Positions 267 to 64,000 of a stretch of DNA of 64,000 nucleotides are shown here, one piece after another. Below the pieces are notes generated by a model. That model worked only from the letters and a program-made list of their open reading frames with translations. It was not told where the DNA came from and ran no database searches. Origin of the DNA: Macrostomum hystrix. Its lineage: Eukaryota; Animalia; Platyhelminthes. Location: contig CATNEN010000005.1 in assembly GCA_950097015.1 (NCBI GenBank), forward strand, positions 248,001-312,000, given 5' to 3'. Made by a program: the position numbers and the translations under genes. Positions within the stretch are counted from its first letter, which is position 1, and the number at the start of each line of letters is the position of its first letter.

Positions 267-3200
267 CTCAAGGTGAACATTGACAAGTCAGGCTCCGGCA
301 GCTTCATCACTCATCGATCGCTGCTATTAAAGAAGTGCCAGAATATGTTCGAGACGCCCCTACTAGACCAGATGAATGCCAAGGCTGAGCATTGGGACGA
401 CATCATTGCCAAAGAAGAGAAAGAGGAGAAGAAGAAATCGCTTGAAGAGGAGAAAGAGGAGCAAGTTAAAAAAGTGAAGGATCAGTACTACGGTAATATT
501 CGGTAAGTTTCTTTAAGTTATTTATTGTCTGAAGCTATTGCGCGGCGCATCTGAAGACTGCGTACGGCTGTTCAGTCCATGGACTGGGGCGACGCCACAT
601 ACACCCTCAATTACCCCCAGCTAATGCTGGTGCCCATTTGACAACTGGGTGAACTCAGGCGATGCAGAGTTAAGTGTCTTGCTAGATTACACAAACTGTT
701 CTTGTGGAGTCTGGAATCGAACCCCCGACCTTCAAGTCGTAAGTCTCGAGTCTAATCACGCATTTTTATTAGATTAGGTACACTACAACCTCTTGTCTCC
801 TGACTTTGCGTTGGCAAACAAACTGAAGTTGTGAGTTTGTTTTTTTATCTCACAAACAGATCAATTTCTCGTAAATAGAAACTATTTTAAAACTTCAAAA
901 AGCTAAAGAAATTATCTGGCGCTTCAGTTAACAGTAGAAAAATCACGATATACCCCCTGTGGAAGAGCCACGGTGGTAATTTAAACACCCACTGGCCACT
1001 GTCTACTTGTCTACTACTAACTACAGTACACTGTCTACTTGTCTACTACAGTACACTGTCTTTTTGTCTACTACAGTACACTGTCTTCTTGTCTACTACA
1101 GTACACTGTCTACTTGTCTACTACAGTACACTGTCTACTTGTCTACTACTAACTACAGTACACTGTCTACTTGTCTACTACAGTACACTGTCTTCTTGTC
1201 TACTACAGTACACTGTCTACTTGTCAACTACAGTACACTGTCTACTTGTCTACTACAGTACACTGTCTACTTGTCTACTACAGTACACTGTCTTCTTGTC
1301 TACTACAGTACACTGTCTAGTTGTCTACTACAGTACACTGTCTACTTGTCTACTACAGTACACTGTCTACTTGTCTACTACAGTACACTGTCTTCTTGTC
1401 TACTACAGTACACTGTCTTCTTGTCTACTACAGTACACTGTCTACTTGTCTACTACAGTACACTGTCTACTTGTCTACTACTAACTACAGTACACTGTTT
1501 ACTTGTCTACTACAGTACACTGTCTTCTTGTCTACTACAGTACACTGTCTACTTGTCAACTACAGTACACTGTCTACTTGTCTACTACAGTACACTGTCT
1601 ACTTGTCTACTACAGTACACTGTCTTCTTGTCTACTACAGTACACTGTCTAGTTGTCTACTACAGTACACTGTCTACTTGTCTACTACAGTACACTGTCT
1701 TCTTGTCTACTACAGTACACTGTCTAGTTGTCTACTACAGTACACTGTCTACTTGTCTACTACAGTACACTGTCTACTTGTCTACTACAGTACACTGTCT
1801 AGTTGTCTACTACAGTACACTGTCTAGTTGTCTACTACAGTACACTGTCTACTTGTCTACTACAGTACACTGTCTACTTGTCTACTACAGTACACTGTCT
1901 TCTTGTCTACTACAGTACACTGTATAGTTGTCTACTACAGTACACTGTCTACTTGTCTACTACAGTACACTGTCTACTTGTCTACTACAGTACACTGTCT
2001 ACTTCACGATAGCTCCCACACCGAATGACCGATTTTCGTTTTTAAGTCCACGTCACGGACGTCAGCATCTTCGAGATATTCAGCGATTCTTGTCGAAGAC
2101 CGCTGTGGTGACAAGGACAACTAACATTGCTTTGTATAAGCCTCTATAACAAATCCATATTGGCTCAAAAATATCAAATTAACATAATAATCAATATAGA
2201 ATGTGATCACCAATCATATCCGACTTGTGGTTACATGATAACAATTATGATTAGAAAAATGATGCCCAAATTGGTGGTTTTTGCCACCAGACACCCCGAC
2301 GATAACTGTTTAACATCTCGACGATGCCGATGTTTTGTGATTCTGGAAGTTGTTTAATCGGCTAGAGCGGAAAGTTTTCATGGCGATTAGTTGATTATTT
2401 AGGAGATACAGAAAAAATAAAATGGGGTATTTGAAATACCCTCCTTTGGTTTTTCTACTATTAAAGCCTTTGTATATCCCTAACTGCCCTGTGTAAATTT
2501 TGGCCAGTCAGTCAGCCTGTACTGCTCTGAAAATAAATCTGAGTGCATTGCCTTAGCCTCCTAAACTGCTCCGTCTAGTGTTGCGAGGAAGTGAATCTTT
2601 CCCTAAAACAATATGTTTGGTAGCATAGAATCGTATATCACTTTTTTATGTGTCTAATTTTTCCTTAGTAGAACGGTGAAGACCCAGTTACTGGAAAATG
2701 CAGTCAGTCTGCGGGCTTATTTCCTCTGTGTATCCGCTGTTTCTGTAAGACTTGGCTACTTAATCCTTTTAAGACTTCCTATATTGTAGGGCCCAATCTG
2801 TGTCTAATTGCGCACTTCAAAATTACGTTTAAAAAAACTAAGAGATATCAAGACACATAGGACAAAAAATTATTCCTTCTAACAAAAAATCTGCTAGAAT
2901 AGTTTCTGTATTATGATAATCATTGGCAGCACTTGTTACACATTCTAGTAATCAGCATCTATATCTAAAGTGTTAGTTATTTTAATGTGTTCTAATTCTG
3001 TTCTAATCTACACCAACTGCCCGTGTGTAATAACTTGCCCTCCCCCTATCTGAAAAATGCTGTCCCATGTCAAGCCTAGCTTTTCAAATCTAGCCTGCCA
3101 TATATGAGATCGTGTGCGTTTGTGTGTCCACTGAGTTTAACGTGGGAACCTTTTCTTCTACTAGCTAAAACATAGTGATTGTCTGAAATGTGCAAACTAA

Positions 3201-6200
3201 AGCTTTGTTTAGCTTCGAGCAAACTTGCCTAAATTTTTTAGCTTTAATTTGGCCGATTAAATTTCATAGTGATTTCTAAGAAATCAGATCATTTTTGCTT
3301 TTAACAATGTTGGTTATTGGGAATTAGATTATAATCAGTATTAGAAAATAGGATCCTTTAATTGTTTCGAGTGGGATTTTTATTGGAATATTCTATAGTC
3401 TAGAATAGGATTATTATGAATACTAGAATATTTACTTGTAACTAGGCTACAAGGTTAGAGCGTCGGACTCACGACTTGAAGGTCGGGGGTTTGATTCCCG
3501 ACTCCACTCGAGCAATCTGTGTCATTTTAGAAAGACACTTAACACTGCATTGCTTCAGTTCACCCAGCTATTAAACGTCCATGTTTTTGCGAGCGCCTGA
3601 ATGCTTTGGGGGTGACTGATTAGTTGACAGACTAGTCAAGGGTGTCCTGTGGTTGAGCTGCGCAGCCCTAATAGTTAGGCTTGAACAGTGAAATTGGAGA
3701 AATTCGCGTCAGGGTGTCCATAGTGGTCTAGTTCCACCTGTTGTAGCTCTTTAAGGTCTAGATCGATAAGAGAGATAGATATAGATAAAGGTCGGTGACC
3801 GCCGAAGTCGGAGATGATGCAGGCACATTCGGGATAAAGTTTGAAGGTCTGGAAAGGCCGCACTGAGGCGCAGTGCAAATTCGTGTATAGGGGTGTATGA
3901 AATACACTAGCTCTTATGGGAAAAATCGGACCTTCGGCCAGAAACATTGAATATCTCGACGGTCTGAAGAGCTGGCGACTTGTTTCTTGTTTCAGAAGAT
4001 GCGCAACAAAACGTGTGCCCGTGTTCTTGAGTTTCGTGTGCTTGCATTGTTCTGTTCGGGTGCTGCAAAAAATTTGTCGGGGGGGGGAATTCCCCCCCCC
4101 CTTGGTAGTTCTACTGTTAAGAATGTGAATTGTTGTTAGTAAATAAAGAAAATCTGACAAGATTTTTCTAAACAAATTAAATCTAAAAAACTTGTCAGAT
4201 TCATCGGCGAGCTCTACATGAAGGACGTCCTGACGGCCAACATAATCTACAGCTGCATCAACGCCCTGCTACCCAATCCGTCGCAGAAAGGCGACAATCG
4301 CAGCACTCTAGTTGAGTCGCTGGAGTGCCTCTGTGAATTATTGCGCACAGTTGGCAAGAAACTCGAATCGAATAGGAAACCATCCGATGCTAATCAGATC
4401 GATAACGCGTTCGGTCGAATTAAACAGATCATTGCGGATAAGACCATAGAATCCAAGGTGCGATTCAAGCTAACCGACGTTGTTGAAATGCGCGGGAGAA
4501 ATTGGGAGCTAAGAGAAATGGAGCGTCGACTTCAGGAGCGACCAATGACAAAGGAGGAGCTGGAACAGAAGGAACGCGAAGAGGAGGCCAGGCGCGCCAT
4601 GGCGGCTAGCAATATCGGCGGCGGCGGCGGAGGTCGCGGCGGTCATCGCGGCGGCTACGGTCGACCGCCGGCATCTCCGGCTTCAGCGCTACCACCAACA
4701 GCGTCGGGCACGGAATGGACGCCAGTTGTAGCTAATAGTCGGCGTCAACAGAAAATGGATACTAGGAAACTGATCCTGGAAACTCCAAGCAGTGCTGGCG
4801 GCCTTGGCGGCTTGTCGGATTCCTCCAGCGGCGCCGGTATTGGCGGCGGAGGCAGCGCCGCGTCGTCGGCTACGCCTAGACTCGGTCCGTCGCGTCCGAA
4901 GTTTAGTCAGCAACGCGGCGCCGGAGCTGCCGCGGCGGCGGCCGCCAAGGAGACAGCCGGCGATGTCGGACGATCGCCTGCTGTGCAACGGTGAGCCGAG
5001 TGCCTGTTTGATATGCAGATTTTCGTTTGGACTGGGATTTGACGTTAGGACTATGGGATTCCCAATTTATGACTATTATAATTTTGGATAAGGGTATTAG
5101 AAATCTTTGACTATTTCGCTTCTTTTATATGTTATAATATTTATATAGTTAAGGACTTCAACTGGTTCTTAATTTTATTCCTGTAAATTCAGGATTCTAG
5201 GGTCAGAGATAATAAAATATTGCTACAAAGCGAAATATGTTAATATCCGAGCTAATATCTAAAAATTCCACTGTAGTGGCATGCTATTTTCATAATTTAC
5301 AAAAAAATTATTTGCAAGACTACACCAGCGAAAGCACGAAACAATGACAATTTGTGGTCTCTCCTAAAAGTCTTGCCATATTGAAGGCTTTCCTGTTTGA
5401 GTCTCTGCAGTCTTTGTTTTCAACTAACTGTGGGGATTTAGGTTGAATTCGCTACATTTACTGCTCATTTAAACTACTCACTTTGCAAGACTACACCAGC
5501 GAAAGCACGAAACAATATCTATTTGTGATCTCTCCTAAAAGTCTTGCTAGAATAAAGGCTTTCCTGTTTGAGTCTCTGCAGTCTTTGTTTTCAACTAACT
5601 GTGGGGATTTAGGTTGATTTGCCACATTTACTACTCACAAACTGCTCACTTTGTATGTGACGGGCAAGACTACACCAGCGAAAGCACAAAACAATATCCA
5701 TTTGTGATCTCTCCTTAAAGTCTTGCTAGAATAAAGGCTTTCCTGTTTGAGTCTCTGCAGTCTTTGTTTATTTAACTTACTGTCGGGATTTAGGTTGAAT
5801 TCGCTACATTTACTGCTCATTTAAACTACTCACTTTGCAAGACTACACCAGCGAAAGCACAAAACAATATCTATTTGTGAACTCTCCTAAAAGTCTTGCT
5901 AGAATGAAGGCTTTCCTGTTTGAGTCTCTGCAGTCTTTGTTTATTTAACTTACTGTCGGGATTTATGTTGAATTCGCAACATTTACTGCTCATTTAAACT
6001 ACACACTTTGCAAGACTACACCAGCGAAAGCACAAAACAATATCTACATCTATTTGTGATCTCTCCTAAAAGTCTTGCCAGATTGAAGGCTTTCCTGTTT
6101 GAGTCTCTGCAGTCTTTGTTTTTAACTAACTGTGGGGATTTAGGTTGATTTGCCACATTTACGACCCACTTTGTATGTGACGCGGCAAGACTACACCAGC

Positions 6201-49400: not shown

Positions 49401-52400
49401 ACCACAGTACACCATCGACTAGTCTGAAAATAATTTCAAGGGGAGTAAATCCCTTGGTATAACAACGGGTGGCAAAATGGCTTGGTAGTCCTACTGTTAA
49501 ATGCTGTACATCTGGCTCCTCACTTAATCCGCATGAAAAACTCTTTCTAATTCTCCAGTGACGCAGTACATGCTAGCCCTCGGCGACAGCCGAGGCGTCG
49601 GCGGAAGCGGCGGTAGCGGTGGTCGCGACGATCTAATGCTGATTGACTTCAGCCGGCACTCGGCCATAGAATCATTCGATCTCAGTAGGGCCAGATGGCG
49701 TCAATTATTGTCGGCCGCTGAGACTGACTCAAACTCGGACCAGCAGCTCAACGGTCAGGAGCGCACCAGGACTGTCTGTCTGGTGTCCGAGCAGCAGGAA
49801 CTGGAACCCGGTCGGCTGTTTGTTCAACGCAGCGCCACAGTCAGTCGGACTGTGCGTCAGCCTGGCGGCGTCACCGCGGCATCTCCGTCGTCTGCTTCCG
49901 CTGCCTCGTCGACGACAGCGTCTGTCGCCGTTGAAACTGTACTGCCGCCTCATTGTCAGGAGGATCTGTGCGATCTATTAGTTTGGGACACTGCCAACGC
50001 TAATCACGCTACTAATAGTAGTAGCGGCGGTGGCGACGATTGCATTCTGGTTAGAGGCGGCCCGCTGGACGCCCTGCTAGTATACGCCTGCCTGCCAGGC
50101 AACGATAGGCCGCATATTCTGTTCTGCGAGAGTTTCGCTGCCACATTTCCCTGCTTCGCTAAGCCGACCGACTTGCTAACTAAGATTGTGGAACGCTGCT
50201 TGCATTTTAAGGTGATGCTGACAAAAATATATATTTTTAGTTTCGAAAGTAAACCAAGCTTTATCATTTCTAATAAGTATTTAGGATTTACCTTTTGGAG
50301 TCTAGAACTCCGATTTTTAATTAGTTCATGGATAGTCGAAAGTTTACAAAAGGTGGTTAAGAGCCTTCTGGAATTCCCTATGCAGGTCATGATGATTTGG
50401 CATTTCCCAACGAGTATTTTGAGGAGTCGATATTTCCCGATGAGTATTTTTAGAGTTCTGGAATTCCGAATAAGCATTTATAAGATTCGGAAATTCCCAA
50501 TCGGTATATTAAGAATTTTGGAATTTCCAACAATTATTTTAAGAAATTCGGAATTTCCAACGAGTTCCGAGCTTGAAAAAATGTTACAAAAAAATATTTT
50601 TTATCGGAAATTTCCTATGAGTATTTTTGGATTTGGGAATTCCCAACGTCTATTTTTAGGATTTGGGAATTCCCCCATTGTCTTTATTATTGTAGATTAG
50701 TGAAGAACTTCTTAAAGAAACTCTTGTATCATTTTATAAAAGTGGTTTAATTGTCTATGGTCCAAACCTTCAACGCACCAATCTGCGCGCAGACCAAAGG
50801 CAACAAGGAGACACTGTGGAAGTCCTCATTCGCCTTTCTCATTCGAGTACTGGACGAGTCTACTCAGCAGGATCGCCAGCGCCGGCTTAACAACAATGAA
50901 ACTGGCGAGTCCAGCGTTGAAAACACCTCAGCTAGACTCATGAATCAGCTGGCGTTATTGAAACAGCGTCTGTTAGCCGACGGAAATTTGGCCGAGGTGC
51001 AGATACTTGGCAGCGCTCTGCACTGTCTAAGCGAAGAAGTCGACCAACAGACGATGTCAATTCCAAGCGCGCCTGCTGCTGCTGCTGATTCTGGCTTATC
51101 ACTGCGGCGGCGAAGTATATTAGAATTCGGACCGAAACAAGTGGCGGAGCAAATCACACTTTTGGATGCTCAACTGTATCGCCGGATCGACATACAGGTG
51201 AGAATAAAATTTTGAAGTGACTAGGATGAGATTTTGAAGAAGTTTGAATATGATTTGAGATGACTAAAATGAGTTTTAGAAGTAGCTTGGATGACATTTT
51301 GAAGTAACTAAGGATGAGATTTTGGAGTAACTATAGGGTGAGATTTTGAAGTAGCTAGGGTGAGATTTTGAAGTAGCTAGGGTGAGATTTTTAAGTAGCT
51401 AGGGTGAGATTTTGAAGTAGCTAGGGTGAGATTTTGAAGTAACTAGGGTGAGATTTTGAAGTAACTAGGTGTGGTTTTCAGCGTGTTTACATGTAAAATA
51501 AACTTCTTTAAAGTGTATTATTTGAATTTGTGATTCAAAAGTCTATTTCACTTTTTACCGACCGTCCCCCCGCCTCCGTCTCATTGCTCAGGAGTATTTA
51601 GCCTTCGTCCGTGCGCGATCCGGCGAACAATTCGCCAATCTGCAGGCGTTTATCAATTTCTTCAATCGGCTTGGCTTCTGGGTGAAGACCCTCATACTGG
51701 GCCGGCCCAGCGACAGGATGCGCGACAGGCAGCGCCAAATGAGCTTCTTCTGCAAAGTGGCCGAAGAATTACGCAGACATCACAATTTCAATTCGCATCT
51801 GGCTATTGTGCTGTGCTTAGTTAGCCTAGACCGACTGCCATGGCCTGGTACGCTTCAGTTTTTTCATTTATTTTGTCAAGTACGCGAGTACTTATTTAAG
51901 TACGCGAGTACTCAATAAAGTATGCGAGTACTTATTCAAGTACGCAAGTACTTAATCAAGTATGCGAGTACTTCCGTTTTCGCTCCTCAGGTCGCTCGGT
52001 GCGCCGCAAATTAAAAGACTTTACAAGCCGTTTGGCCAATCAGTCCGCGTTCGCCCGCGAATATTTTCGCAACATGAGCACCACTGAACCGCCTCTGGTG
52101 CCTCACGTTGGTGAAGTTTTGAAATACCTAACCAGGATACACGAGGGCGTCATTGGCAACGACGAGATTCGCCAATTGCCAGCTAATTATCCGGTTGAGA
52201 GGGCCAAGTCGATCGGCCCAGTGATCAACTATTGGAAGTACTGGATGTCATTCAACTGCCTGGACTTTTGCATCAAGTTCAAGCGATACTCTGCAAACTC
52301 GATGTGAGTTGATCTGTCTCATTCCCTGCCCTCTCACCCTGAGCCTTCAGTGACACACCATACCCTCTCACCCTGAGCCTTCAGTGACACACCCTACCCT

Positions 52401-53396
52401 CTCACCCTGAACCTTCAGTGACACACCATACCCTCTCACCCTGAACCTTCAGTGACACATCCTACCCTCTCACCCTGAGCCTTCAGTGACACATCCTACC
52501 CTCTCACCCTGAGCCTTCAGTGACACATCCTACCCTCTCACCCTGAGCCTTCAGTGACACATCCTACCCTCTCACCCTGAGCCTTCAGTGACACATCCTA
52601 CCCTCTCACCCTGAGCCTTCAGTGACACATCCTACCCTCTCACCCTGAGCCTTCAGTGACACATCCTACCCTCTCACCCTGAGCCTTCAGTGACACATCC
52701 TACCCTCTCACCCTGAGCCTTCAGTGACACATCCTACCCTCTCACCCTGAGCCTTCAGTGACACATCCTACCCTCTCACCCTGAGCCTTCAGTGACACAT
52801 CCTACCCTCTCACCCTGAGCCTTCAGTAGCACATCCTACCCTCCCAACCTGAACCTTCAGTAAGTCACCCTACCCTCTCACCCTGAACCTTCAGTGACAC
52901 CCTACCCTCTCATCCTGAACCTTCAGTGACACACCCTACCCTCTCACCCTGAACCTTCAGTGACACATCCTACCCTCTCATCCTGAACCTTCAGTGACCC
53001 GCCCTACCCTCTCACCTGAACCTTCAGTAGCACATCCTACCCTCCCAACCTGAACCTTCAGTAGCACATCCTACCCTCCCAACCTGAACCTTCAGTAAGT
53101 CACCCTACCCTCCCACCCTGAACCTTCAGTAAGTCACCCTACCCTCCCAACCTGAACCTTCAGTAAGTCACCCTACCCTCCCACCCTGAACCTTCAGTGA
53201 CACATCTATGCCACACTGAATACTTATGGATTGCTAATCTATGCCACCTTCTTTCCACCTAAACAGGTACTACGACTTTCAGAGAAATGAGGAAATTCTA
53301 GCCAGCATTGACAATTTCAGTCAGTCGCTAGACGAATCTCAGCTAGCAGATTTGGATACAGAAATTCGACACAAATACAGCCATAGGCCGAAATAG
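43437..53396 (+). CDS. RAPGEF1: Rap guanine nucleotide exchange factor C3G/RAPGEF1-like (Ser-rich linker, REM and CDC25 GEF domains)
   Basis: Exons about 43437-44032, 49559-50211, 50793-51197, 51592-51847, 51991-52303 and 53267-53396 (TAG). The joins from 44032 onward are frame-consistent. REM: VRGGPLDALLVYA...LFCESFAATF. CDC25: QVAEQITLLDAQLY, FFNRLGFWVKTLIL, HHNFNSHLAI, VPHVG, INYWKYW, YYDFQRNEEI. Confidence 0.85.
44040..44340. repeat. 23-bp minisatellite (tttctaaatggtttcttagaatg)n starting next to a splice donor
   Basis: Direct tandem units. Confidence 0.9.
44340..45610. repeat. 35-bp minisatellite (gattagggtgagattttgagaaactgccaaccgat)n
   Basis: Direct tandem units containing TTAGGG. Confidence 0.95.
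46106..46250 (-). mobile_element. SINE family A, 3' half, abutting a family B copy
   Basis: Nearly identical to 533-680. Confidence 0.7.
46255..46500 (-). mobile_element. tRNA-derived SINE family B
   Basis: Reverse complement: gttaacgcgtctgcctctcgcgccaaggtccctgagttcgattccgcggcgaggcc plus a body shared with 59033-59315. Confidence 0.7.
47820..48575. repeat. CT-rich array, ~14-bp core (ttcactccctctcc)n
   Basis: Direct tandem units. Confidence 0.9.
49031..49496 (+). mobile_element. MITE family TTAA-CAGTAG, internally deleted copy
   Basis: TTAA-CATTAGAACT ... GTAGTCCTACTG-TTAA, with a shared interior. Confidence 0.8.
51230..51470. repeat. 22-bp minisatellite (gggtgagattttgaagtagcta)n
   Basis: Located in the RapGEF intron after 51197. 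Confidence 0.85.
51875..51975. repeat. 20-bp palindromic mini-array (aagtacgcgagtacttattc)n
   Basis: About 5 units in a 143-bp intron. Confidence 0.8.
52325..53200. repeat. 34-bp minisatellite (ccctctcaccctgagccttcagtgacacatccta)n
   Basis: Fills the last RapGEF intron. Confidence 0.95.
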
Positions 53397-53789
53397 TTGT
53401 TGGTCAGTTGACTAGTTATAACTTAAAAAACTTTTTATACCTTTTTACAAGCTTTTTGCCACTTATTTTGTTATTTTCTTTAGTTTTGCAATAAATTATT
53501 TTATTAGTGACAAAAATCTCTAATTTTGACCCTTATAATTAGAATTATAATTTTTTAATTAGATACTACTCTACCTTTGTGCGTTCTGTAAGTAGTATAT
53601 TCAGAGTTCTTTTATATGAACAGTTTTTTGTTTTAGCGAATTCTTACAAGAACTCTAAATGTTCTTTAGCATTTGTTTTTTTTCAAGTTACATTGTCATT
53701 GTTCCTTTTGCCGCATGTATGGAATCTCATTGTCCGATTATTTTAATTAATTTATTTTATTTTATAAACTTTGTCACATTGACCCACGC

Positions 53790-54640
53790 TGAATATTTAT
53801 GGATTGCTAATCTATGCCACACTGAATAGTTATGGATTGCTAATCTATGCCACACTGAATAGTTATGGATTGCTAATCTATACCACACTGAATAGTTATG
53901 GATTGCTAATCTATACCACACTGAATAGTTATGGATTGCTAATCTATACCACACTGAATAGTTATGGATTGCTAATCTATACCACACTGAATAGTTATGG
54001 ATTGCTAATCTATACCACACTGAATAGTTATGGATTGCTAATCTATACCACACTGAATAGTTATGGATTGCTAATCTATACCACACTGAATAGTTATGGA
54101 TTGCTAATCTATACCACACTGAATAGTTATGGATTGCTAATCTATACCACACTGAATAGTTATGGATTGCTAATCTATACCACACTGAATAGTTATGGAT
54201 TGCTAATCTATACCACACTGAATAGTTATGGATTGCTAATCTATACCACACTGAATAGTTATGGATTGCTAATCTATACCACACTGAATAGTTATGGATT
54301 GCTAATCTATACCACACTGAATAGTTATGGATTGCTAATCTATACCACACTGAATAGTTATGGATTGCTAATCTATACCACACTGAATAGTTATGGATTG
54401 CTAATCTATACCACACTGAATAGTTATGGATTGCTAATCTATACCACACTGAATAGTTATGGATTGCTAATCTATACCACACTGAATAGTTATGGATTGC
54501 TAATCTATACCACACTGAATAGTTATGGATTGCTAATCTATACCACACTGAATAGTTATGGATTGCTAATCTATACCACACTGAATAGTTATGGATTGCT
54601 AATCTATACCACACTGAATAGTTATGGATTGCTAATCTAT
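53790..54640. repeat. 33-bp highly homogeneous minisatellite (tatggattgctaatctataccacactgaatagt)n
   Basis: Direct tandem units, with a partial copy at 53205-53247. Confidence 0.95.
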
Positions 54641-55149
54641 ACCTCTCAATTTAATGTGAATTTGTTCTAAAAAAATTTTTGTTTGATTGTCAAATATTAA
54701 CCATTTTGTCATTTTTTCATTTGATTGCTTGTTTCGATGGCTAATAGATGCTATTCGTTAGCTTGACTTTGTGTTTCATTAAAAATGTTTTGTAAATGAG
54801 TCTGTATTAAAAAGTTTGCAATAAAAAATTCTTTTTGTTGCCATTTTTTAAAGTACACATGTTGGCTGCAACGCATTCAACACCTTGTTGATTTTTTATG
54901 CCTCAGTTCTTGTCAAAGTATATTAATTTAAACAGACATGGCTTAAATGCTGTCAATATTAAAATTTAAATTATATTAGCTAACACAGTTATTATACCCT
55001 TCGCGTGAGTTTATGAGCATTAATTTGCAATCATTGCACTTTGAGCTGTACTTCTATTTCAGAAATTTTTTGTCTTTGAACAAGTTTTCCTGGGAAAAAA
55101 AATTGTTCTATTTTCTCGAGGAATCTAAATGTAAATTAAGATATTGATG

Positions 55150-56395
55150 GTGGGAGATGGGTAGGTGTAGGGTGAGAGATGGGGTAGATGTAGGGTGAGA
55201 GATGGGGTAGATGTAGGGTGAGAGATGGGGTAGATGTAGGGTGAGAGATGGGGTAGGTGTAGGGTGAGAGATGGGGTAGGTGTAGGGTGAGATATGGGGT
55301 AGGTGTAGGGTGAGAGATGGGGTAGATGTAGGGTGAGAGATGGGGTAGGTGTAGGGTGAGAGATGGGTTAGGTGTAGGGTGAGAGATGGGGTAGGTGTAG
55401 GGTGAGATATGGGGTAGGTGTAGGGTGAGAGATGGGGTAGATGTAGGGTGAGAGATGGGGTAGGTGTAGGGTGAGAGATGGGGTAGGTGTAGGGTGAGAG
55501 ATGGGGTAGGTGTAGGGTGAGATATGGGGTAGGTGTAGGGTGAGAGATGGGGTAGGTGTAGGGTGAGAGATGGGGTAGATGTAGGGTGAGAGATGGGGTA
55601 GGTGTAGGGTGAGAGATGGGGTAGATGTAGGGTGAGAGATGGGGTAGATGTAGGGTGAGAGATGGGGTAGGTGTAGGGTGAGAGATGGGGTAGATGTCGG
55701 GTAAGAGATGGGGTAGATGTCGGGTAAGAGATGGGGTAGATGTAGGGAGAGAGATGGGGTAGATGTCGGGTGAGAGATGTGGTAGATGTAGGGAGAGATA
55801 TGGGGTAGATGTAGGGTGAGAGATGTGGTAGATGTAGGGAGAGATATGGGGTAGATGTAGGGTAAGAGATGGGGTAGATGTAGGGTGAGAGATGTGGTAG
55901 ATGTAGGGAGAGATATGGGGTAGATGTAGGGTAAGAGATGGGGTAGATGTCGGTTGAGAGATGGGGTAGATGTCGGTTGAGAGATGGGGTAGATGTAGGG
56001 TGAAAGATGGGGTAGATGTAGGGTGAGAGATGGGGTAGATGTAGGGTAAGAGATGGGGTAGATGTAGGGTGAAAGATGGGGTAGATGTAGGGTGAAAGAT
56101 GGGGTAGATGTAGGGTGAGAGATGGGGTAGATGTCGGGTGAGAGATGGGGTAGATGTCGGGTGAGAGATGGGGTAGATGTCGGTTGAGAGATGGGGTAGA
56201 TGTCGGTTGAGAGATGGGGTAGATGTAGGGTGAAAGATGGGGTAGATGTAGGGTGAGAGATGGGGTAGATGTCGGTTGAGAGATGGGGTAGATGTCGGTT
56301 GAGAGATGGGGTAGATGTAGGGTGAAAGATGGGGTAGATGTAGGGTGAGAGATGGGGTAGATGTAGGGTGAAAGATGGGGTAGATGTAGGGTGAG
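55150..56395. repeat. 23-bp G-rich minisatellite (gagatggggtagatgtagggtga)n
   Basis: Direct tandem units. Confidence 0.95.
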
Positions 56396-57310
56396 TGTTA
56401 TCTCTAGACCATGGCTATAATGGATAAACAGCATTTTAAGTCAAACAAATTGTAATTAATCGAGTCTGACTTTTTGTCTCGCTGTGAAAGTGTGATTTCC
56501 CAATAGAATAGGCACGCAATTAGTTATTCTAAATTAGTTATTCTTACGATTGATAACAAAAGCACACTGTTGTAATGTGCAGTGCTGAATATCAGAGCAT
56601 ATTATGAATTGGATTAGGTAAGTTATGAGGAGTTAGTATACGTACGTATTAACATGTAAATTGAAGTGGTTTTACTGAATTCGTTAATTGAGTAATTAGT
56701 TACTTATTCCAGGAATGGGGAGAAGTGATAAAGTAATGAGGGATTTTGATTAAAGTACGAGCGTAGATCTGCCACGAGAAGTTGATCTGTATATTTAATA
56801 GCCATGGATTATAAAGATACTAAATTTTTTTACGAAAAGATAAATAAGAAATCGCATCGAGTCAGTATAATATAAATGAAAATGGTGATTGCGAGATGCT
56901 ATAAATCCATCTTGACCTCATGCTGAACGCCAAGCTACAAAACGGAGGAGGGAAACGTACAGTTTTCGAGTCGTGCTCAAAACAAAATATGCTGCCATAG
57001 CTATAATGTGCAGCAATTATCTACAGCACAGTGAAGGCTCTGTGGACATCAACAGTGGATTCCCAAAACTGGGATCAGACCTGACTGCGAATGCGACAGT
57101 ATTTTTCCCCAATGCAGTCGTTATCCCATAAAAATTGCTGCTTTTGCGTTTTCGCCATTTCACAGTGGGAAAAACAAGTGGCTATGAGAAGCGGGTCCGA
57201 TAAGTGCTGCTTGTTTGATTTTTTCATGGCACGCATGAAATGGGAGTTTATCCCCATTCCCTCAACCAATCCAAATGGGAATGAGAGATTCCCCTAAAAA
57301 CTCGGACGCA

Positions 57311-57317
57311 TATAAAA
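57311..57317 (+). promoter_or_regulatory. TATA box of the metallothionein-like gene
   Basis: TATAAAA about 107 bp upstream of ATG 57418. A candidate poly(A) signal ATTAAA lies at 58125-58130. Confidence 0.6.
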
Positions 57318-57417
57318 AGGCTGATGCAGAGCGGAGTTGAAATGTAAATATCACTATAATTCCAGTGAACCAGTTTCAGATTCAACTTCTCCACGCTTCT
57401 TCTAAAAGCATCTGAAC

Positions 57418-58071
57418 ATGTGTAAGTAAACTTTTATTTCTTTATTTTCTTTTTTACACTCGCATATTTCAAAATGTTAAAGAGAAATGTACGATGAAAC
57501 TCAAAGAAAAAATGAGAGAAATCCTTCGTCTTATAAGACTCGACTTTGCGAAGATATCTTAGTCAGGTTAGCCAAAACACATCGAATGTACGCAGTCTAG
57601 CCGAGTGGAGAGAAATGAATGTACGCAGGCTAGCCGAGTGGAGAGAAATGAATGTACGCAGGCTAGCCGAGTGGAGAGAAATGAATGTACGCAGGCTAGC
57701 CGAGTGGATAGAAATGAATGTACGCAGGCTAGCCGCTCCCCGAGGAACAAGTAAACATTCCCTCCGCCTTATCTCACCCAACCACCCCATTTTAAGCCGG
57801 CCAAAAGTCATGCCAGCCGTGCGCCGACGATAAGCAGAAGCACTCCGAGGATCTGTGCGGCGAAAAGTGCGAATGTCCACCAGCTGACTGCAACGCTGGC
57901 GAATGCTGCGAGAAGAACGCCTGCTGCCAGTCAGACGCGGGCAAGCAGCATCATCATCATGAGCACGGAGATGCTGGACATCATCACAAGCATGAGGCCG
58001 GTCACGAAGGGCATCATCATCAGCACGATGCTGGGCATCAGGGACATCACCATCAGGATCACAAGCATTGA
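57418..58071 (+). CDS. 92-aa metallothionein-like protein with Cys-rich domain and His-rich tail (two exons)
   Basis: Exon 1 is ATG T (57418-57421) followed by gtaagt. Exon 2 follows the ttttaag acceptor, 57797-58071 (TGA). Protein: MSGQKSCQPCADDKQKHSEDLCGEKCECPPADCNAGECCEKNACCQSDAGKQHHHHEHGDAGHHHKHEAGHEGHHHQHDAGHQGHHHQDHKH. 10 Cys, 21 His, no aromatic F/W/Y. Confidence 0.8.
57585..57735. repeat. 33-bp repeat, about 4 units, in the metallothionein-like gene intron
   Basis: Unit aatgtacgcaggctagccgagtggagagaaatg. Confidence 0.85.
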
Positions 58072-58444
58072 AGTTCCGGAATAAGAGATGTGTAGAGCGT
58101 TGTAATCTTTTCGGCTCTGAATGAATTAAAAAATACTTTAACCTCAACAAAGTCGATATTCTGTACCGAAATTTTATGAAAAAAACTTTTTGACCAATCA
58201 TCTGCATGACCATCAAGATAATATATGTTGTAAAGTTATCTAACACGCATACTTCTAAAAGCAAAAGTACAGAAAACAAAAAATATGTGACACTCGATAT
58301 TCAGACAAAGTCGGCAATCATCTTATCTTAAAGTAAATGTTCTCAATTTATTGTAACTTTCGGCTGTTATTTTGAATAAATAAGGGATGGAAAAAACCGT
58401 AGAGTATGAGATATGGGGAGAAAGGGACCATGGGAGATTGTGGA

Positions 58445-58705
58445 GAGAATGGGAGATTGGGTAGAATGGGAGAATGGGAGAGTGGGATATTTGGTAGAGA
58501 ATGGGAGAGTGGGATATTTGGTAGAGAATGGCAGAGTGGGATATTTGGGAGAGAATGGGAGAGTGGGATATTTGGTAGAGAATGGGAGAGTGGGATATTT
58601 GGTAGAGAATGGGAGAGTGGGATATTTGGGAGAGAACGGGAGAGTGGGATATTTGGGAGAGAATGGGAGAGTGGGATATTTGGGAGAGAATGGGAGAGTG
58701 GGATA
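58445..58705. repeat. 27-bp minisatellite (gagaatgggagagtgggatatttggta)n
   Basis: Direct tandem units. Confidence 0.9.
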
Positions 58706-59032
58706 TTTAAGGGAGTAGGAGATTAGGGAGAAGATGAGGGATGATGAGATTTCCCTCAGGGATAATGATAAGGGAAATGTTAAAAACATTTGACAGACAA
58801 CTAAGATAGTAATTGAATATATGTGACTTAAAAAATTGTTACATTTCAGATAAAACTGCTGTTTTCGATCACTTATAGATAAAACGATTGAAATATAGAA
58901 TATATTTATCTAATATTCAAATCTTCATTCTGTACATATATTCAACTTCAGCCTAATTATATTACCCCACCTCTAATAATCTACCTACTTCTCATAACCT
59001 AGACTCTACTTTCCACAACCAATTTCTCGTAA

Positions 59033-59315
59033 CGCGGCAGTTAACGCGTTTGCCTCTGGCGCCAAGGTCCCTAAGCTCGATTCCGTGGCGAGGCCACATT
59101 TATTTGAGGCGCAGCCGCGGAGAAGGCTTTGGGGGCTTGTCGTGCAATTCACGCCCTTGAGGGCCAACCTCCAAGGCGCAGTGCAGTGAGAGTGTACACT
59201 GCCTGACGATGACAAAGTCAGGGCAGTTGTACACACCTGTGTTAGTGTGTGCTCAGTAGTCAGCGAAATGGGCAGAATTGCCTCCTCGCTGGCTGCAGGT
59301 CGAGTGTCACTAAAT
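59033..59315 (+). mobile_element. tRNA-derived SINE family B, full copy
   Basis: Homologous to 46255-46500. A head-only copy lies at 13915-13982 and a body-only copy at 16035-16237. Confidence 0.7.
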
Positions 59316-59449
59316 ACCGCGCCATTGCCCGCCGCAGCCCTCCTGCAACTTTTATTCTACTAACCATTTCTCGAAACCTAGTTCTCATTTATGTTATTTT
59401 TCCGGTACAATAAAAGGGTTTATCAATCTTATCAAACAGAAGAAATTCG

Positions 59450-62400
59450 TCATTTCGGTTTCTGTTGCTGCTGTTGCTGCTTCACAGCAGCAGACTTCTG
59501 CCTACCAGCTGAAGGAGCCCCGCTTTTTCGTCGAGCGCTTGCCATCAGGGCTGTCTTCGGCCGGTCGCCGGCGGCCCCAGCGCCGACGCCGTCTTCCCAG
59601 TCCAGCTCTTCGTCTTCGGCCAGAGAGACGCGGAGCAATTTTCTCTGACGCTTTAGAGAGGCCGGCTTCACTGACCAGGCCGCAGCTGCTGCCGCTGCTG
59701 CTGCTGTTTCCTCTTCATCCTTTTCACCATTCGAAGCCGGATCAGAAGCTGGCTTGTCAGCTTCTGTGGCTGTCAGCCGTTTTACTGATGCGATGCACTT
59801 TGTTGACTGTTAATTGGACATTGTGGGCGAGAGGTTCACTGAAGGATGAGTGGTAGATAAGGGTGAGAAGTGCTCGCATCGGCGAGACGCAATGCCTGTG
59901 AGGTATGAGTCAGTCCAGGCCCACGGGCTAAGGTCTGCGATGCCTCACACTTGCAGACGCTTTTTGAGCAGGCTTGGCAGGAAGGAGCCCTGTGCCTTCG
60001 GGTGCAGGAATCCCTCCACGCTGTCCCGTCAGCTGACCCATGGGTACACGTCCAGCGAGTGTTCAAGGCTGACCCTAGGGCAGCCGGACAGAATGGGCAA
60101 CAGTGCTGGATGACCCATCCATGGCCTCTGGCCAAACTGGGTACCTCTAGCCCTGGCTGGAGGGAAAGGTGTCACCCTATGACCTTAACAGGGTATGCGG
60201 CCAGTCCGCAGCGTTTGTGCACCTGTGCGTGATCAGGTACCTCTGATCACAGGATGATGCCAGGAGAGAATGTATACATATGCTAGCCAGGAGAGAATGT
60301 ACATATGCTAGCCAGGAGAGAATGTACATATGCTAGCCAGGAGAGAATGTACATATGCTAGCCAGGAGAGAATGTACATATGCTAGCCAGGAGAGAATGT
60401 ACATATGCTAGCCAGGAGAGAATGTACATATGCTAGCCAGGAGAGAATGTACATATACCAGCCGGGAGAGAGAATCGCGGCCGTAAAGATAGCTGTACGA
60501 GGCTCACCCAGTCATAGAAGGCCCAAGCGGCGGCGCTCCGAAGCCGAAGCTCTCTTGGATCGATGCCAGCTAGCAGCAGCTCCGCCCGTGCCGCAATCTC
60601 CGGATGAATATCGTTAACATCCATCTGGCTCAGAGTTTTGATGTCTTTTAGTAGGGGCTGACAACGCTTCCACTTCTGTAAAATGATGTAACTTTTAATT
60701 ATAAAAAACACACTACTGCTAACCAAATAAAAAGCGTAGTTTCTTAAAAAAATTAACAAAACAAAAAAAATCCTACCCGGACTCGCTTCTCATAGTTGCC
60801 TAGCAGCAGGAGCATAGCCATAACTGACTGATGAACTAGCTGGTCGGGGTCAGCGTAGCCTCTTAATTCCAGCAGGCTTTTGCTGTCCACATCCAATTGA
60901 TGAATTAGGCGCTTTTTGAGACGCCTTTCTCGTTTGACCAGCTCCCGACAGCGTTCAATCTCTTTTAGTAGTTCAGGAGGGAGAAGACGACCGCCGCTGT
61001 TAGCCAGATAAGAATCTGCTTCGACTAGCAGGGACTCCAGCCGGGTGACGTCTCGACTGCCTTCAGCCAGTTTGCGCTCGGCAGACAGTGCTGAATGTGG
61101 GGAATTATTTTAACAGGTGATTATCTGTGTTTTAACACGTGATTGTCAGTGTTTTAACAGGTGATTGTCTGTGTTTTAACAGGTGATTGTCAGTGTTTTA
61201 ACAGGTGATTGTCTGTGTTTTAACAGGTGATTTTTAGTGTTTTAACAGGTGATTTTCAGTGTTTTAACACGTGATTGTCTGTGTTTTAACAGGTGATTGT
61301 CTGTGTTTTAACAGGTGATTGTCTGTGTTTTAACAGGTGATTTTTAGTGTTTTAACAGGTGATTGTCAGTGTTTTAACAGGTGATTGTCAGTGCTTTAAC
61401 AGGTGATTGTCTGTGTTTTAACAGGTGATTTTTAGTGTTTTAACAGGTGATTGTCAGTGTTTTAACAGGTGATTGTCAGTGTTTTAACAGGTGATTGTCA
61501 GTGTTTTAACAGGTGATTGTCAGTGTTTTAACAGGTGATTGTCAGTGTTTTAACAGGTGATTGTCAGTGTTTTAACAGGTGATTGTCAGTGTTTTAACAG
61601 GTGATTGTCAGTGTTTTAACAGGTGATTGTCAGTGTTTTAACAGGTGATTGTCTGTGTTTTAACAGGTGATTTTTAGTGTTTTAACAGGTGATTGTCAAT
61701 GTTTTAACAGGTGATTGTCAGTGTTTTAACAGGTGATTGTCTGTGTTTTAACAGGTGATTTTTAGTGTTTTAACAGGTGATTGTCAGTGTTTTAACAGGT
61801 GATTGTCAGTGTTTTAACAGGTGATTGTCGGTGTTTTAACAGGTGATTGTCAGTGTTTTAACAGGTGATTGTCAGTGTTTTAACAAGTGATTTTTAGTGT
61901 TTTAACAGGTGATTGTCAGTGTTTTAACAGGTGATTGTCAGTGTTTTAACAGGTGATTGTCTGTGCTTTAACAGATGATTTTCGTTGTTTCGACACTTTG
62001 ATGTCAGGTTGAAAGTATGAGTAAAGAATCAAAAGTGATTAAACTGTTCTCACAATCTTTAAGCCGCAGACCAATGATGAGTTCGTCCGCTTGTCGCAGC
62101 AGGCCGGCTGCTGAATTGGCTCCTCCGTCCTCGGCTGCGTCTCCTTTGCTTCTAACAGCCTCAGCCGCTGCCTCCAATGCGTCTAGTCGACCCCTCTGCA
62201 GGCACTCCTTCAGCGTGGCCAGCCTCGTCTTGCGCTCTTTGCTAGCTGCCTCCGCTTCTTCGCGCAATTGCCTGCGCTTCTCCTCCGCCTCCGCTTCCGC
62301 TTGCTTCCGTTTCTCTTCTTCGTGCTTCCGATTCTCTTCTTCTTGCTTCCGATTCTCTTCTTCTTGCTTCCGATTCTCTTCTTCTTGCTTCCGATTCTCT

Positions 62401-64000
62401 TCTTCTTGCTTCCGTTTCTCTTCTTCTTGCTTCCGTTTCTCTTCTTCGTGCTTCCGATTCTCTTCTTCTTGCTTCCGTTTCTCTTCTTCTTGCTTCCGAT
62501 TCTCTTCTTCTTGCTTCCGTTTCTCTTCTTCTTGCTTCCGATTCTCTTCTTCTTGCTTCCGATTCTCTTCTTCTTGCTTCCGTTTCTCTTCCGCTTCGGC
62601 TTCCTCCTGCTTCCGTTTCTCTTCTTCTTGCTTCCGATTCTCTTCTTCTTGCTTCCGATTCTCTTCTTCTTGCTTCCGATTCTCTTCTTCTTGCTTCCGA
62701 TTCTCTTCTTCTTGCTTCCGATTCTCTTCTTCTTGCTTCCGTTTTTCTTCCACTTCGGCTTCCTCCTGCTTCCGTTTCTCTTCCTCCTGCTTCCGTGTCT
62801 CTTCCTCCTGCTTCCGTTTCTCTTCTTCATGCTTCCGTGTCTCTTCCGCCTCCGCTTCCGCCCGTTTCCGCTCCTCAGCTTCCGCTTGCTCCCGCTGCCG
62901 CTTCTCCTCCGCCTGAACGGCCTCCTCCTCAGTCAGTGGTGGCAGCCCCGAGCGCTGCCTGGCATAGTCGGCCTGTCGTCGTCGACGGCGAACAGCTTCG
63001 GCTAGTCGGCGAGAGCGTGATGTCTCGGCTTCCTGACGAGTGGCTTCGCGATTGGCCAAATCTGCCGGAGTCTCGTAGCGGAATGTGAGCAGGGTCGCTG
63101 GTGGCTTGGAGGCGGAGGCTTCAACGGATTCCAGCGTGACCGGCGACCCAGCTTCCTTTGCGTGCTGCGTGGGACGGGATGATCGGGGTTTGAATCTGAT
63201 GAGTCACGTGAGTCACGTGATGCTTTTAGAAAGTCGCGTGATGCTTTTAGAAAGTCACGTGATGCTTTTAGAAAGTCACGTGATGCTTTTAGAAAGTCAC
63301 GTGATGCTTTTATAAAGTCACGTGATGCTTTTATAAAGTCACGTGATGATTTTTTCAAAATCACGTAATTATTTTTTAAGTAACGTTTTGTTTTTTTGAA
63401 GTTTCTTGTTGCTTTTATAAGCAACTTGAGGCATTCTAATTATTCAGCCTTAAAAAAGTCACGTGATGCTTCTAAAGCCCACGCGATAATTTTAAAAGTC
63501 ATGTTCGTCCATGCCGTTCCATGATCACCTGATACCTAAATCACGTGATGCTTTGCTGGAGTCTAAGTTTACATTTCGCAGAAAAAAGCTTTAAGAGTCT
63601 TTCGTAGTCAAAAATTTAATAATTGAGCACATAAAGTTCGTAGAAACTTTCTGATTCCAGCATACCTTAGCAGCCGGCACAGTAGCCTCCAAAACGCCTT
63701 TACTATCTGTGCCCTTGAAAGCGATCAGTTCACCGTTTGGCAGCCGGAGTTTGAGTCGTTCCGTTGCCATAGCAACAGCCGACTCGGCAACGGCCAGCTG
63801 CACCACGGTGGGCGCATCAGCTCGCAACAGAAGCTGCTGGGGAGTCAAGAGCCTGCAGGAATCCGTCAGCCACCAACTCGGTCCGACAAAGGGAAACTGT
63901 TCCGCAGCGACAGTTCGTGACACCCCGACAGCTCTGACCAAATAGTTGAAGAAGCACTTCTCTTCTGCCTTGCCATTGTCTGTCTCGTCGTCTAGCGATG
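59450..64000 (-). CDS. 3' part of a multidomain protein: beta-rich (hillarin/KY-like?) domain, E/R/K helical repeat and dynein MTBD-like module; 5' end outside the window
   Basis: Exons >64000-63666, 63164-62054, 61090-60777, 60675-60508 and 59806-59450, frame-consistent. C-terminal module: SLLELRGYADPDQLVHQSVMAMLLLLG...|KWKRCQPLL...DVNDI...RSAAAWAFYDW|STKC. The hillarin/KY resemblance is from recall and is tentative. Confidence 0.7.
60260..60460. repeat. 25-bp minisatellite (gccaggagagaatgtacatatgcta)n
   Basis: Intronic direct tandem units. Confidence 0.9.
61110..61980. repeat. 22-bp minisatellite (aacaggtgattgtcagtgtttt)n filling an intron
   Basis: Direct tandem units. Confidence 0.95.
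62290..62830 (-). repeat. Coding 21-bp repeat encoding (EEENRKQ)n
   Basis: In-frame heptads within exon 63164-62054. Confidence 0.9.
63200..63370. repeat. 21-bp array (gtcacgtgatgcttttagaaa)n
   Basis: Intronic. Further single units lie near 63455-63550. Confidence 0.85.

Follow-up and report, generated by a model that had tools for sequence, protein, structure and literature searches.

A spliced and conserved Macrostomum gene for a small protein with a cysteine-rich half and a histidine-repeat tail

Layout and transcripts of a two-exon gene

The DNA analysed here is a stretch of 64,000 nucleotides from the flatworm Macrostomum hystrix (assembly GCA_950097015.1, contig CATNEN010000005.1, positions 248,001 to 312,000 of the forward strand), referred to below as the window and numbered from its first letter. 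It harbors a two-exon gene for a small protein rich in cysteine and histidine (the Cys/His gene), which is real, spliced and evolutionarily conserved. An earlier note, made from the letters of the sequence, had proposed for this gene a TATA box, a micro-exon made up of ATG plus T, a gtaagt donor, an acceptor, a product of 92 amino acids and an ATTAAA signal. When positions 57100-58400 were read again, these elements were found at the proposed coordinates, base for base.

All elements of the gene lie on the forward strand. Direct reading places a CCAAT box at 57266-57270, about 40 bases 5' of the TATA box, TATAAAAA (57311-57318). Exon 1, as far as RNA shows, spans 57359-57421 and consists of at least 59 bases of 5' untranslated region (UTR), the ATG (57418-57420) and a single further base, T (57421); the true start of the exon is probably near 57340. 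In the observed RNA no AUG precedes the one at 57418, which stands in the context AACATG, with A at -3. Four codons 5' of it, an in-frame stop (TAA, 57403-57405) closes the frame, so that the 92 codons make up the entire coding sequence. A minimal upstream open reading frame (ORF; ATG TAA, 57342-57347) is found about 25 bases 3' of the TATA box; the contigs described below start at 57359.

The intron (57422-57796; 375 bases, phase 1), as defined by the joint in RNA contigs, opens with gtaagt (57422-57427) and closes with ttttaag, the acceptor AG being at 57795-57796. It splits codon 2, and exon 2 begins with CC, which completes a Ser codon. Translation and an alignment of three sequences (see below) delimit a Cys-rich half, residues 2-52, encoded by 57797-57948, and a His-rich tail of 40 residues, 20 of them His, encoded by 57949-58068 and also picked up by the repeat finder. 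The stop codon, TGA, occupies 58069-58071, and the 3' UTR extends from 58072 to 58316 as far as contigs show (samples X1, X4 and X5, below), with ATTAAA inside it at 58125-58130. As had been claimed, the list of ORFs overlooks this gene: it is empty in the Cys/His frame of exon 2, because that frame has no ATG, GTG or TTG start. Micro-exons that carry only the start codon conceal short genes from ORF-based annotation.

Transcripts were sought in seven sequencing runs from two studies, and the assembled contigs of four of them were placed on the window. The predicted splice between 57421 and 57797 is found as an exact joint in the contigs of two samples, X1 (57359-57421 joined to 57797-58240) and X2 (57369-57421 joined to 57797-58059), with GT..AG borders and 375 bases skipped. 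These samples, whose library type is not on record, behave as RNA, because they contain a share of the stretch's sampled words (0.49 in X1, 0.24 in X2) close to the exon share, with intron and flanks absent. The sole coding-region variant in the RNA, T to C at 57993 in X2, changes CAT to CAC and is synonymous in the Cys/His frame. The Cys/His gene is transcribed from the CCAAT/TATA promoter and its phase-1 intron of 375 bases is removed. The proposal that ATTAAA serves as the poly(A) signal needs a correction. The hexamer is present, but contigs extend beyond it, to 58240 in X1, 58316 in X4 and 58310 in X5; therefore, it is not the only 3' end, if used at all.

The samples of the second study (X4 to X7) are identical in sequence to the window, and contain only 57613-57675 and 57679-58316, at a contig depth of 85-155. 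Their contigs continue through the splice acceptor without a break, and include neither exon 1 nor the 5' half of the intron nor the flanks. This pattern is neither that of plain genomic DNA, since the flanks are missing, nor that of spliced mRNA. It is possible that intron-containing RNA was present and that the assembler clipped the short exon-1 branch. Alternatively, there might be a second transcription start within the tandem array carried by the intron (see below).

The protein, its relatives and selection on the reading frame

Translation bears out the description of the product given in the earlier note. The spliced model has 92 codons; ten Cys, arranged as CxxC, CxxxCxC, C, CC and CC, fall in the first half of the protein; Phe, Tyr and Trp are absent from the whole of it; and 20 of the final 40 residues are His. 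In full, the Cys pattern reads C-x2-C-x11-C-x3-C-x-C-x4-C-x4-CC-x4-CC, to which one invariant His is added. The product has 21 His in total, which amounts to 23% of its residues, the density of 50% being confined to the tail. The latter is built of imperfect 11-residue (33-base) repeats, detected by the repeat finder at 57976-58056 with a period of 33 and 2.5 copies. The protein is acidic (16 Asp plus Glu vs 8 Lys), uses 13 residue types and shows no hydrophobic N-terminus or signal peptide. Shuffling the bases of the coding part gave an open frame in 652 of 20,000 cases, and none of these contained more than 12 Cys plus His, as opposed to the 31 observed; hence the Cys/His composition is not due to chance. 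AlphaFold2, given the alignment of three rows, yielded no confident fold (mean predicted local distance difference test, pLDDT, 53; predicted template modelling score, pTM, 0.25), a result that would be expected for a protein folding around metal.

The exon-2 product (90 amino acids; 57799-58069, forward strand) was used as query in an exhaustive phmmer search of 1.84 billion protein representatives with E up to 0.001. A single protein was returned: PAA64456.1 from Macrostomum lignano (E 2.6e-25, 75% identity, residues 2-90), which corresponds to UniProt entry A0A267ESM6, is 82 amino acids long and is annotated as 'hypothetical protein BOX15_Mlig034277g1'. A second M. lignano copy, PAA84756.1 (g2), is in the 90% cluster of PAA64456.1; the orthologues are 73-75% identical to the window product. 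In the PAA84756.1 model, in-frame reading of the 5' UTR has added 33 residues to the N-terminus, which is why the model is marked partial; the true start is the ATG plus T micro-exon at 3100-3103 of its locus (L002, gene region 3001-3901). A word-indexed protein search gave no match with the exon-2 product and only the M. lignano protein with a profile of the three sequences. The ESM Atlas feature search gave no usable match, and neither tblastn nor blastn revealed paralogues within the window. The Cys/His gene is apparently confined to Macrostomum.

The two M. lignano loci were taken from assembly GCA_002269645.1 (L001 on NIVC01001749.1, L002 on NIVC01000363.1). Both have the architecture of the window gene: a TATA box, TATAAAAG, a leader of about 118 bases between it and the ATG (a spacing similar to that in the window), ATG plus T followed by gtaagt, and an acceptor, ...caaag, followed by CC. 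The block ACCAAT..AAAT is also kept in both copies, as the alignment shows. The position of the intron is identical, its length being 568 bases in L001 and 550 in L002 vs 375 in the window. Exon identity between the window and M. lignano is about 71-78%, which marks the window as DNA of a different Macrostomum species; between the two M. lignano copies, identity is 91%. On the upstream side, the end of a RasGEF gene at L001 273-415 matches window positions 53255-53397. On the downstream side, L001 6148-6283 matches 59541-59688, inside the downstream gene. The order RasGEF-domain gene, Cys/His gene, downstream gene is thus common to the window and to NIVC01001749.1.

Full-length similarity, exon structure and synteny all place the window gene in the Mlig034277 family. 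The M. lignano genes share with it the micro-exon, the intron position, the ten Cys, the tail with 50% His and the core of the intronic array; they differ in a tail shorter by about one 11-residue repeat, a longer intron and array units of 37 instead of 33 bases. The gene was described in the earlier note as hidden. This is true with respect to the ORF track, but the M. lignano orthologue was already annotated as a hypothetical protein. Searches of the literature brought up neither a Macrostomum metallothionein nor Mlig034277 nor any His-rich Macrostomum protein. The M. lignano annotation already contains the gene under no name, so that what is novel is not its existence but the reading of its product as a lineage-restricted bipartite Cys/His metal-binding protein.

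The Cys/His frame is conserved in both M. lignano copies and is under purifying selection. All ten Cys, His15 (exon-2 numbering) and both Pro are invariant in the three-way alignment, as are the blocks LCGEKC, CPP.DCN and AGKQHHHH. The M. lignano tails, with 30-31 residues, are 50% His (15 of 30 residues in PAA64456.1, 20 of 40 in the window product), and the difference in length from the window tail, 9-10 residues, corresponds to about one repeat unit. Comparison of the window with L001 by the Nei-Gojobori method gave a proportion of synonymous differences (pS) of 0.70, which is saturated, and a proportion of nonsynonymous differences (pN) of 0.13, with omega about 0.07 after correction. The Cys half (pN 0.14, pS 0.65) and the tail (pN 0.11) are equally constrained. 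Mismatches distribute among the three codon positions as 11:9:35, and the pN/pS ratio computed from the same nucleotide alignment is 0.18 in the Cys/His frame vs 1.3-2.2 in the other two. The third-position excess and the ratio of 0.18 therefore identify a protein-coding gene in which strong purifying selection acts on the Cys/His frame alone.

Exon 2 has a second frame (57797-58084; its product would start PAKSHAS...), which is open in all three sequences. Because its pN/pS is above 1, this frame is regarded as a by-product of CAT/CAC/TGC-rich coding and not as an overlapping gene. The idea that a trans-spliced leader supplies a start codon at the 57797 acceptor was rejected on two grounds: the RNA contig is colinear with exon 1, and an ATG placed right before 57797 would open the other frame, the one with pN/pS above 1.

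The intronic array and the metal-response element motif

The repeat finder and the alignment identify, at 57584-57735 (forward strand), a tandem array of 33-base units in 4.6 copies, with the core AATGTACGCAGGCTAG. This array is the only intron sequence shared by the two species. In M. lignano the units are 37 bases long and present in 7.4-8 copies (L001 3189-3483, L002 3312-3585); the core is retained despite the difference in unit length (33 vs 37 bases) and despite the saturation of neighboring synonymous sites. The 15-base core occurs five times in the window (0.08 expected), always in the array, and in L001 and L002 it is confined to the intron. Because minisatellites abound in the surroundings (17 rows in 14 kb), the array in itself is ordinary; its conservation is not. 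The conserved array is a candidate enhancer or internal promoter. The contigs of X4 to X7 begin within it.

A search of 56800-58800 with Rfam gave as its sole match a trypanosomatid snoRNA in the array, below threshold at 22 bits vs a gathering score of 40, and the match was rejected as chance. A 25-base tandem repeat, GCCAGGAGAGAATGTACATATGCTA, is present in 8.4 copies at 60259-60471, within the neighboring gene region. This repeat and the intronic array unit have GAGAATGTAC...GCTA in common and may be one minisatellite family.

The statement that no canonical metal-response element (MRE) lies upstream of the gene proved correct: the core TGCRCNC is absent from both strands of the interval 50791-60000. 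The window as a whole contains 29 such sites vs 37 expected. The reverse complement of AATGTACGCAGGCTAG includes TGCGTAC, which is one mismatch away from the MRE core and was not counted as an MRE. Absence of the MRE core is consistent with regulation independent of MTF-1.

A putative metal buffer and alternative roles

Ten invariant Cys in CxxC, CxC and CC motifs within some 40 residues are the signature of a single metallothionein-type cluster domain, and a conserved repeat with 50% His offers borderline metal ions imidazole ligands of a classical type. We consider it rather likely that the Cys/His protein is a small cytosolic metal buffer or detoxifier, resembling a metallothionein with an added histidine reservoir; if so, it probably represents an animal metal buffer of a new type. 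A buffer combining thiolate and imidazole ligands would fit the composition, the Cys pattern, the 50% His density, the lack of a signal peptide and the lack of a confident fold, the argument being one from composition.

The half carrying the ten Cys, with its one His, would wrap about 3-4 Zn(II) or Cd(II) ions, or more of Cu(I), as a thiolate cluster, in the manner of a single metallothionein domain. The imidazoles of the disordered acidic tail, with its (G/A)GHHH-type repeats, would hold extra borderline ions (Zn, Ni, Cu(II), Co), with weaker binding that depends on pH. The tail could thus work as a fast-exchange antenna or an overflow store, supplying the thiolate site or taking load off it, and its capacity might be tuned through gain or loss of 11-residue repeat units. 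Control of transcription would probably involve something other than classical MTF-1/MRE sites, possibly the conserved intronic array.

In several respects the protein has the attributes of a metallothionein: with 92 codons it stays in the size range of about 10 kDa or less, CxC, CC and CxxC motifs are present with all ten Cys invariant in the three sequences, and aromatic residues are lacking over the whole product. His, normally absent or rare in metallothioneins, is represented 21 times. Other observations weigh against the metal-buffer interpretation. Cys accounts for 10 of 92 residues (10.9%), below the usual metallothionein range of about 15-30%, which is reached in the N-terminal half only, with 10 of 52 (about 19%). 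At a cut-off as lax as E 10, no Pfam family matches the product, its Cys half or the M. lignano proteins, and no PDB chain, including solved metallothioneins, matches the single sequence or the profile. The only line listed in the Pfam and PDB searches, a His-rich loop of ZIP transporters at E 7.8, was dismissed as noise. TGCRCNC is absent within 6.5 kb upstream of the gene. Finally, zinc-knuckle adaptors and metal-hardened biomaterials include sequences rich in Cys and His, too. Since no described family matches, the protein is described here as metallothionein-like and not as a member of an existing family.

Classical animal metallothioneins, such as the mammalian MT beta domain (M(II)3Cys9), are likewise small, hydrophilic and devoid of aromatics, signal peptide and autonomous fold, and have 9-11 Cys per domain in CxC, CC and CxxC motifs, as does the Cys half of the Macrostomum protein. 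In contrast, the latter has no detectable sequence relationship to them, its Cys are sparser, it contains 21 His where they have none or few, and its gene has no upstream MRE. Caenorhabditis elegans MTL-1 is an invertebrate metallothionein in which His near the C-terminus supplements the Cys ligands; it has few His and no long His-repeat tail, and the Pfam nematode metallothionein model does not match the Macrostomum protein. The two proteins may have short stretches of the pattern CG-D/E-KCEC ... CCEK ... CC in common, a likeness that would serve as a lead. Involvement of His in Zn binding has precedents, as His is stated to modulate it in MTL-1 and in bacterial metallothioneins (work cited in PMC12779199; for the bacterial proteins also PMC7387436).

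The closest concept is offered by the metallothionein of Pseudomonas fluorescens Q2-87, for which a disordered His-rich tail is described (Habjanic, Zerbe and Freisinger 2018, as cited in PMC12779199; also PMC7387436). Here too, a Cys-cluster domain comes first, and the disordered His-rich tail after it provides additional binding capacity. The Pseudomonas protein belongs, however, to the bacterial SmtA/BmtA family, has a zinc-finger-like fold and shows no homology to the Macrostomum protein. Judged by their sequences, the two-part designs of Pseudomonas and Macrostomum must be independent inventions.

Little is understood of how flatworms handle metals. It appears that schistosomes and other parasitic flatworms lack metallothionein genes and depend on phytochelatin synthase (PMC3561135). 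A bolder proposal, which we put forward tentatively and regard as doubtful in its entirety, is that the Cys/His gene represents the first genuine flatworm metallothionein family, one in which a thiolate domain is joined to a repeat-expandable poly-imidazole tail whose capacity is set by repeat number, and which is switched on via the AATGTACGCAGGCTAG intron array and not via MTF-1/MRE. Should the protein bind metal, it would bring to the animal metallothioneins a two-ligand design of independent origin (a thiolate cluster with a His-repeat tail), parallel to that of Pseudomonas, and the promoter and intron of the gene would serve as a metal-responsive cassette in a marine toxicology model. The genus includes a transgenic model species, M. 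lignano, in which the question is testable by RNA interference, reporters and recombinant protein.

Among the alternatives to a metal buffer, the one that stands up best, at a low probability, is a regulator or adaptor of the zinc-knuckle type. One or two structural Zn(Cys)4 sites would bind a partner protein or nucleic acid and the His tail would act as a zinc or pH switch, making the protein a sensor and not a buffer. Such a role could account for Cys that are spaced more sparsely than in classical metallothioneins, as CxxC-x11-CxxxC could be one tetrahedral site, and for the good conservation of residues lying between the Cys as well (LCGEKC, CPP.DCN, QKHS). However, no zinc-finger family was matched, AlphaFold2 gave no confident fold (pLDDT 53, pTM 0.25), and the exhaustive search found no relative beyond Macrostomum, which would be unusual for a regulatory module.

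Slightly less probable is a metal-crosslinked structural protein, whose His-Gly-Ala repeats and Cys would form Zn/Cu-imidazole and thiol bridges and so harden an intracellular structure, for instance the copulatory stylet or components of the adhesive organs. His-rich proteins of worm jaws and mussels are the models for such metal curing, and the composition of the tail resembles these His/Gly-rich sequences; the number of repeats differs between the two species, as is typical of material proteins. In mussel glue, His-rich domains are described as driving zinc-dependent assembly (PMC13022425). Against a structural role, the product lacks a signal peptide and is very small (92 amino acids), very acidic and hydrophilic; its strictly kept Cys pattern resembles a chelating site more than a crosslinking matrix; and the literature contained no paper tying such a protein to Macrostomum structures.

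We rate about as low the possibility that the protein is a nickel/cobalt or copper store comparable to Hpn of Helicobacter pylori, with the His tail as the working part and the Cys pairs as accessories. Hpn (PMC5312948) is a very small cytosolic protein that stores and buffers Ni, is nearly half His and has CC pairs accompanying its His runs; the Macrostomum tail is likewise 50% His in both species. Nonetheless, Hpn is dominated by His throughout (near 45%), has only 4 Cys, is bacterial and is unrelated in sequence; the exhaustive search found the Macrostomum protein only, and PDB gave no match. Furthermore, the Cys half makes up more than half of the Macrostomum protein and is as constrained as the tail (pN 0.14 vs 0.11). 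We know of no need for Ni storage in animals.

The last alternative, in which the transcript is non-coding or decaying and the Cys/His frame arises incidentally from CAT/TGC-rich repeats, might draw on the second open frame of exon 2 in all three sequences, on the low-complexity DNA repeat underlying the tail and on the exclusively unspliced form seen in X4 to X7, but is close to refuted by the selection data, since the 11:9:35 distribution and the pN/pS of 0.18 are peculiar to the Cys/His frame, the other open frame being above 1, and since start codon, split codon, intron phase and all Cys are kept at saturated synonymous divergence.

Two long ORFs in the surroundings of the gene, at 53757-54670 and 55136-56434, represent read-throughs of minisatellites and have no Pfam match. 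Minisatellites with units of 21-40 bases are very dense at 51209-56395 and 58431-63353, examples being those at 55149-56395 (54 copies of 23 bases), 53784-54643 (26 copies of 33 bases), 52325-53206 (26 copies of 34 bases) and 61108-61980 (40 copies of 22 bases).

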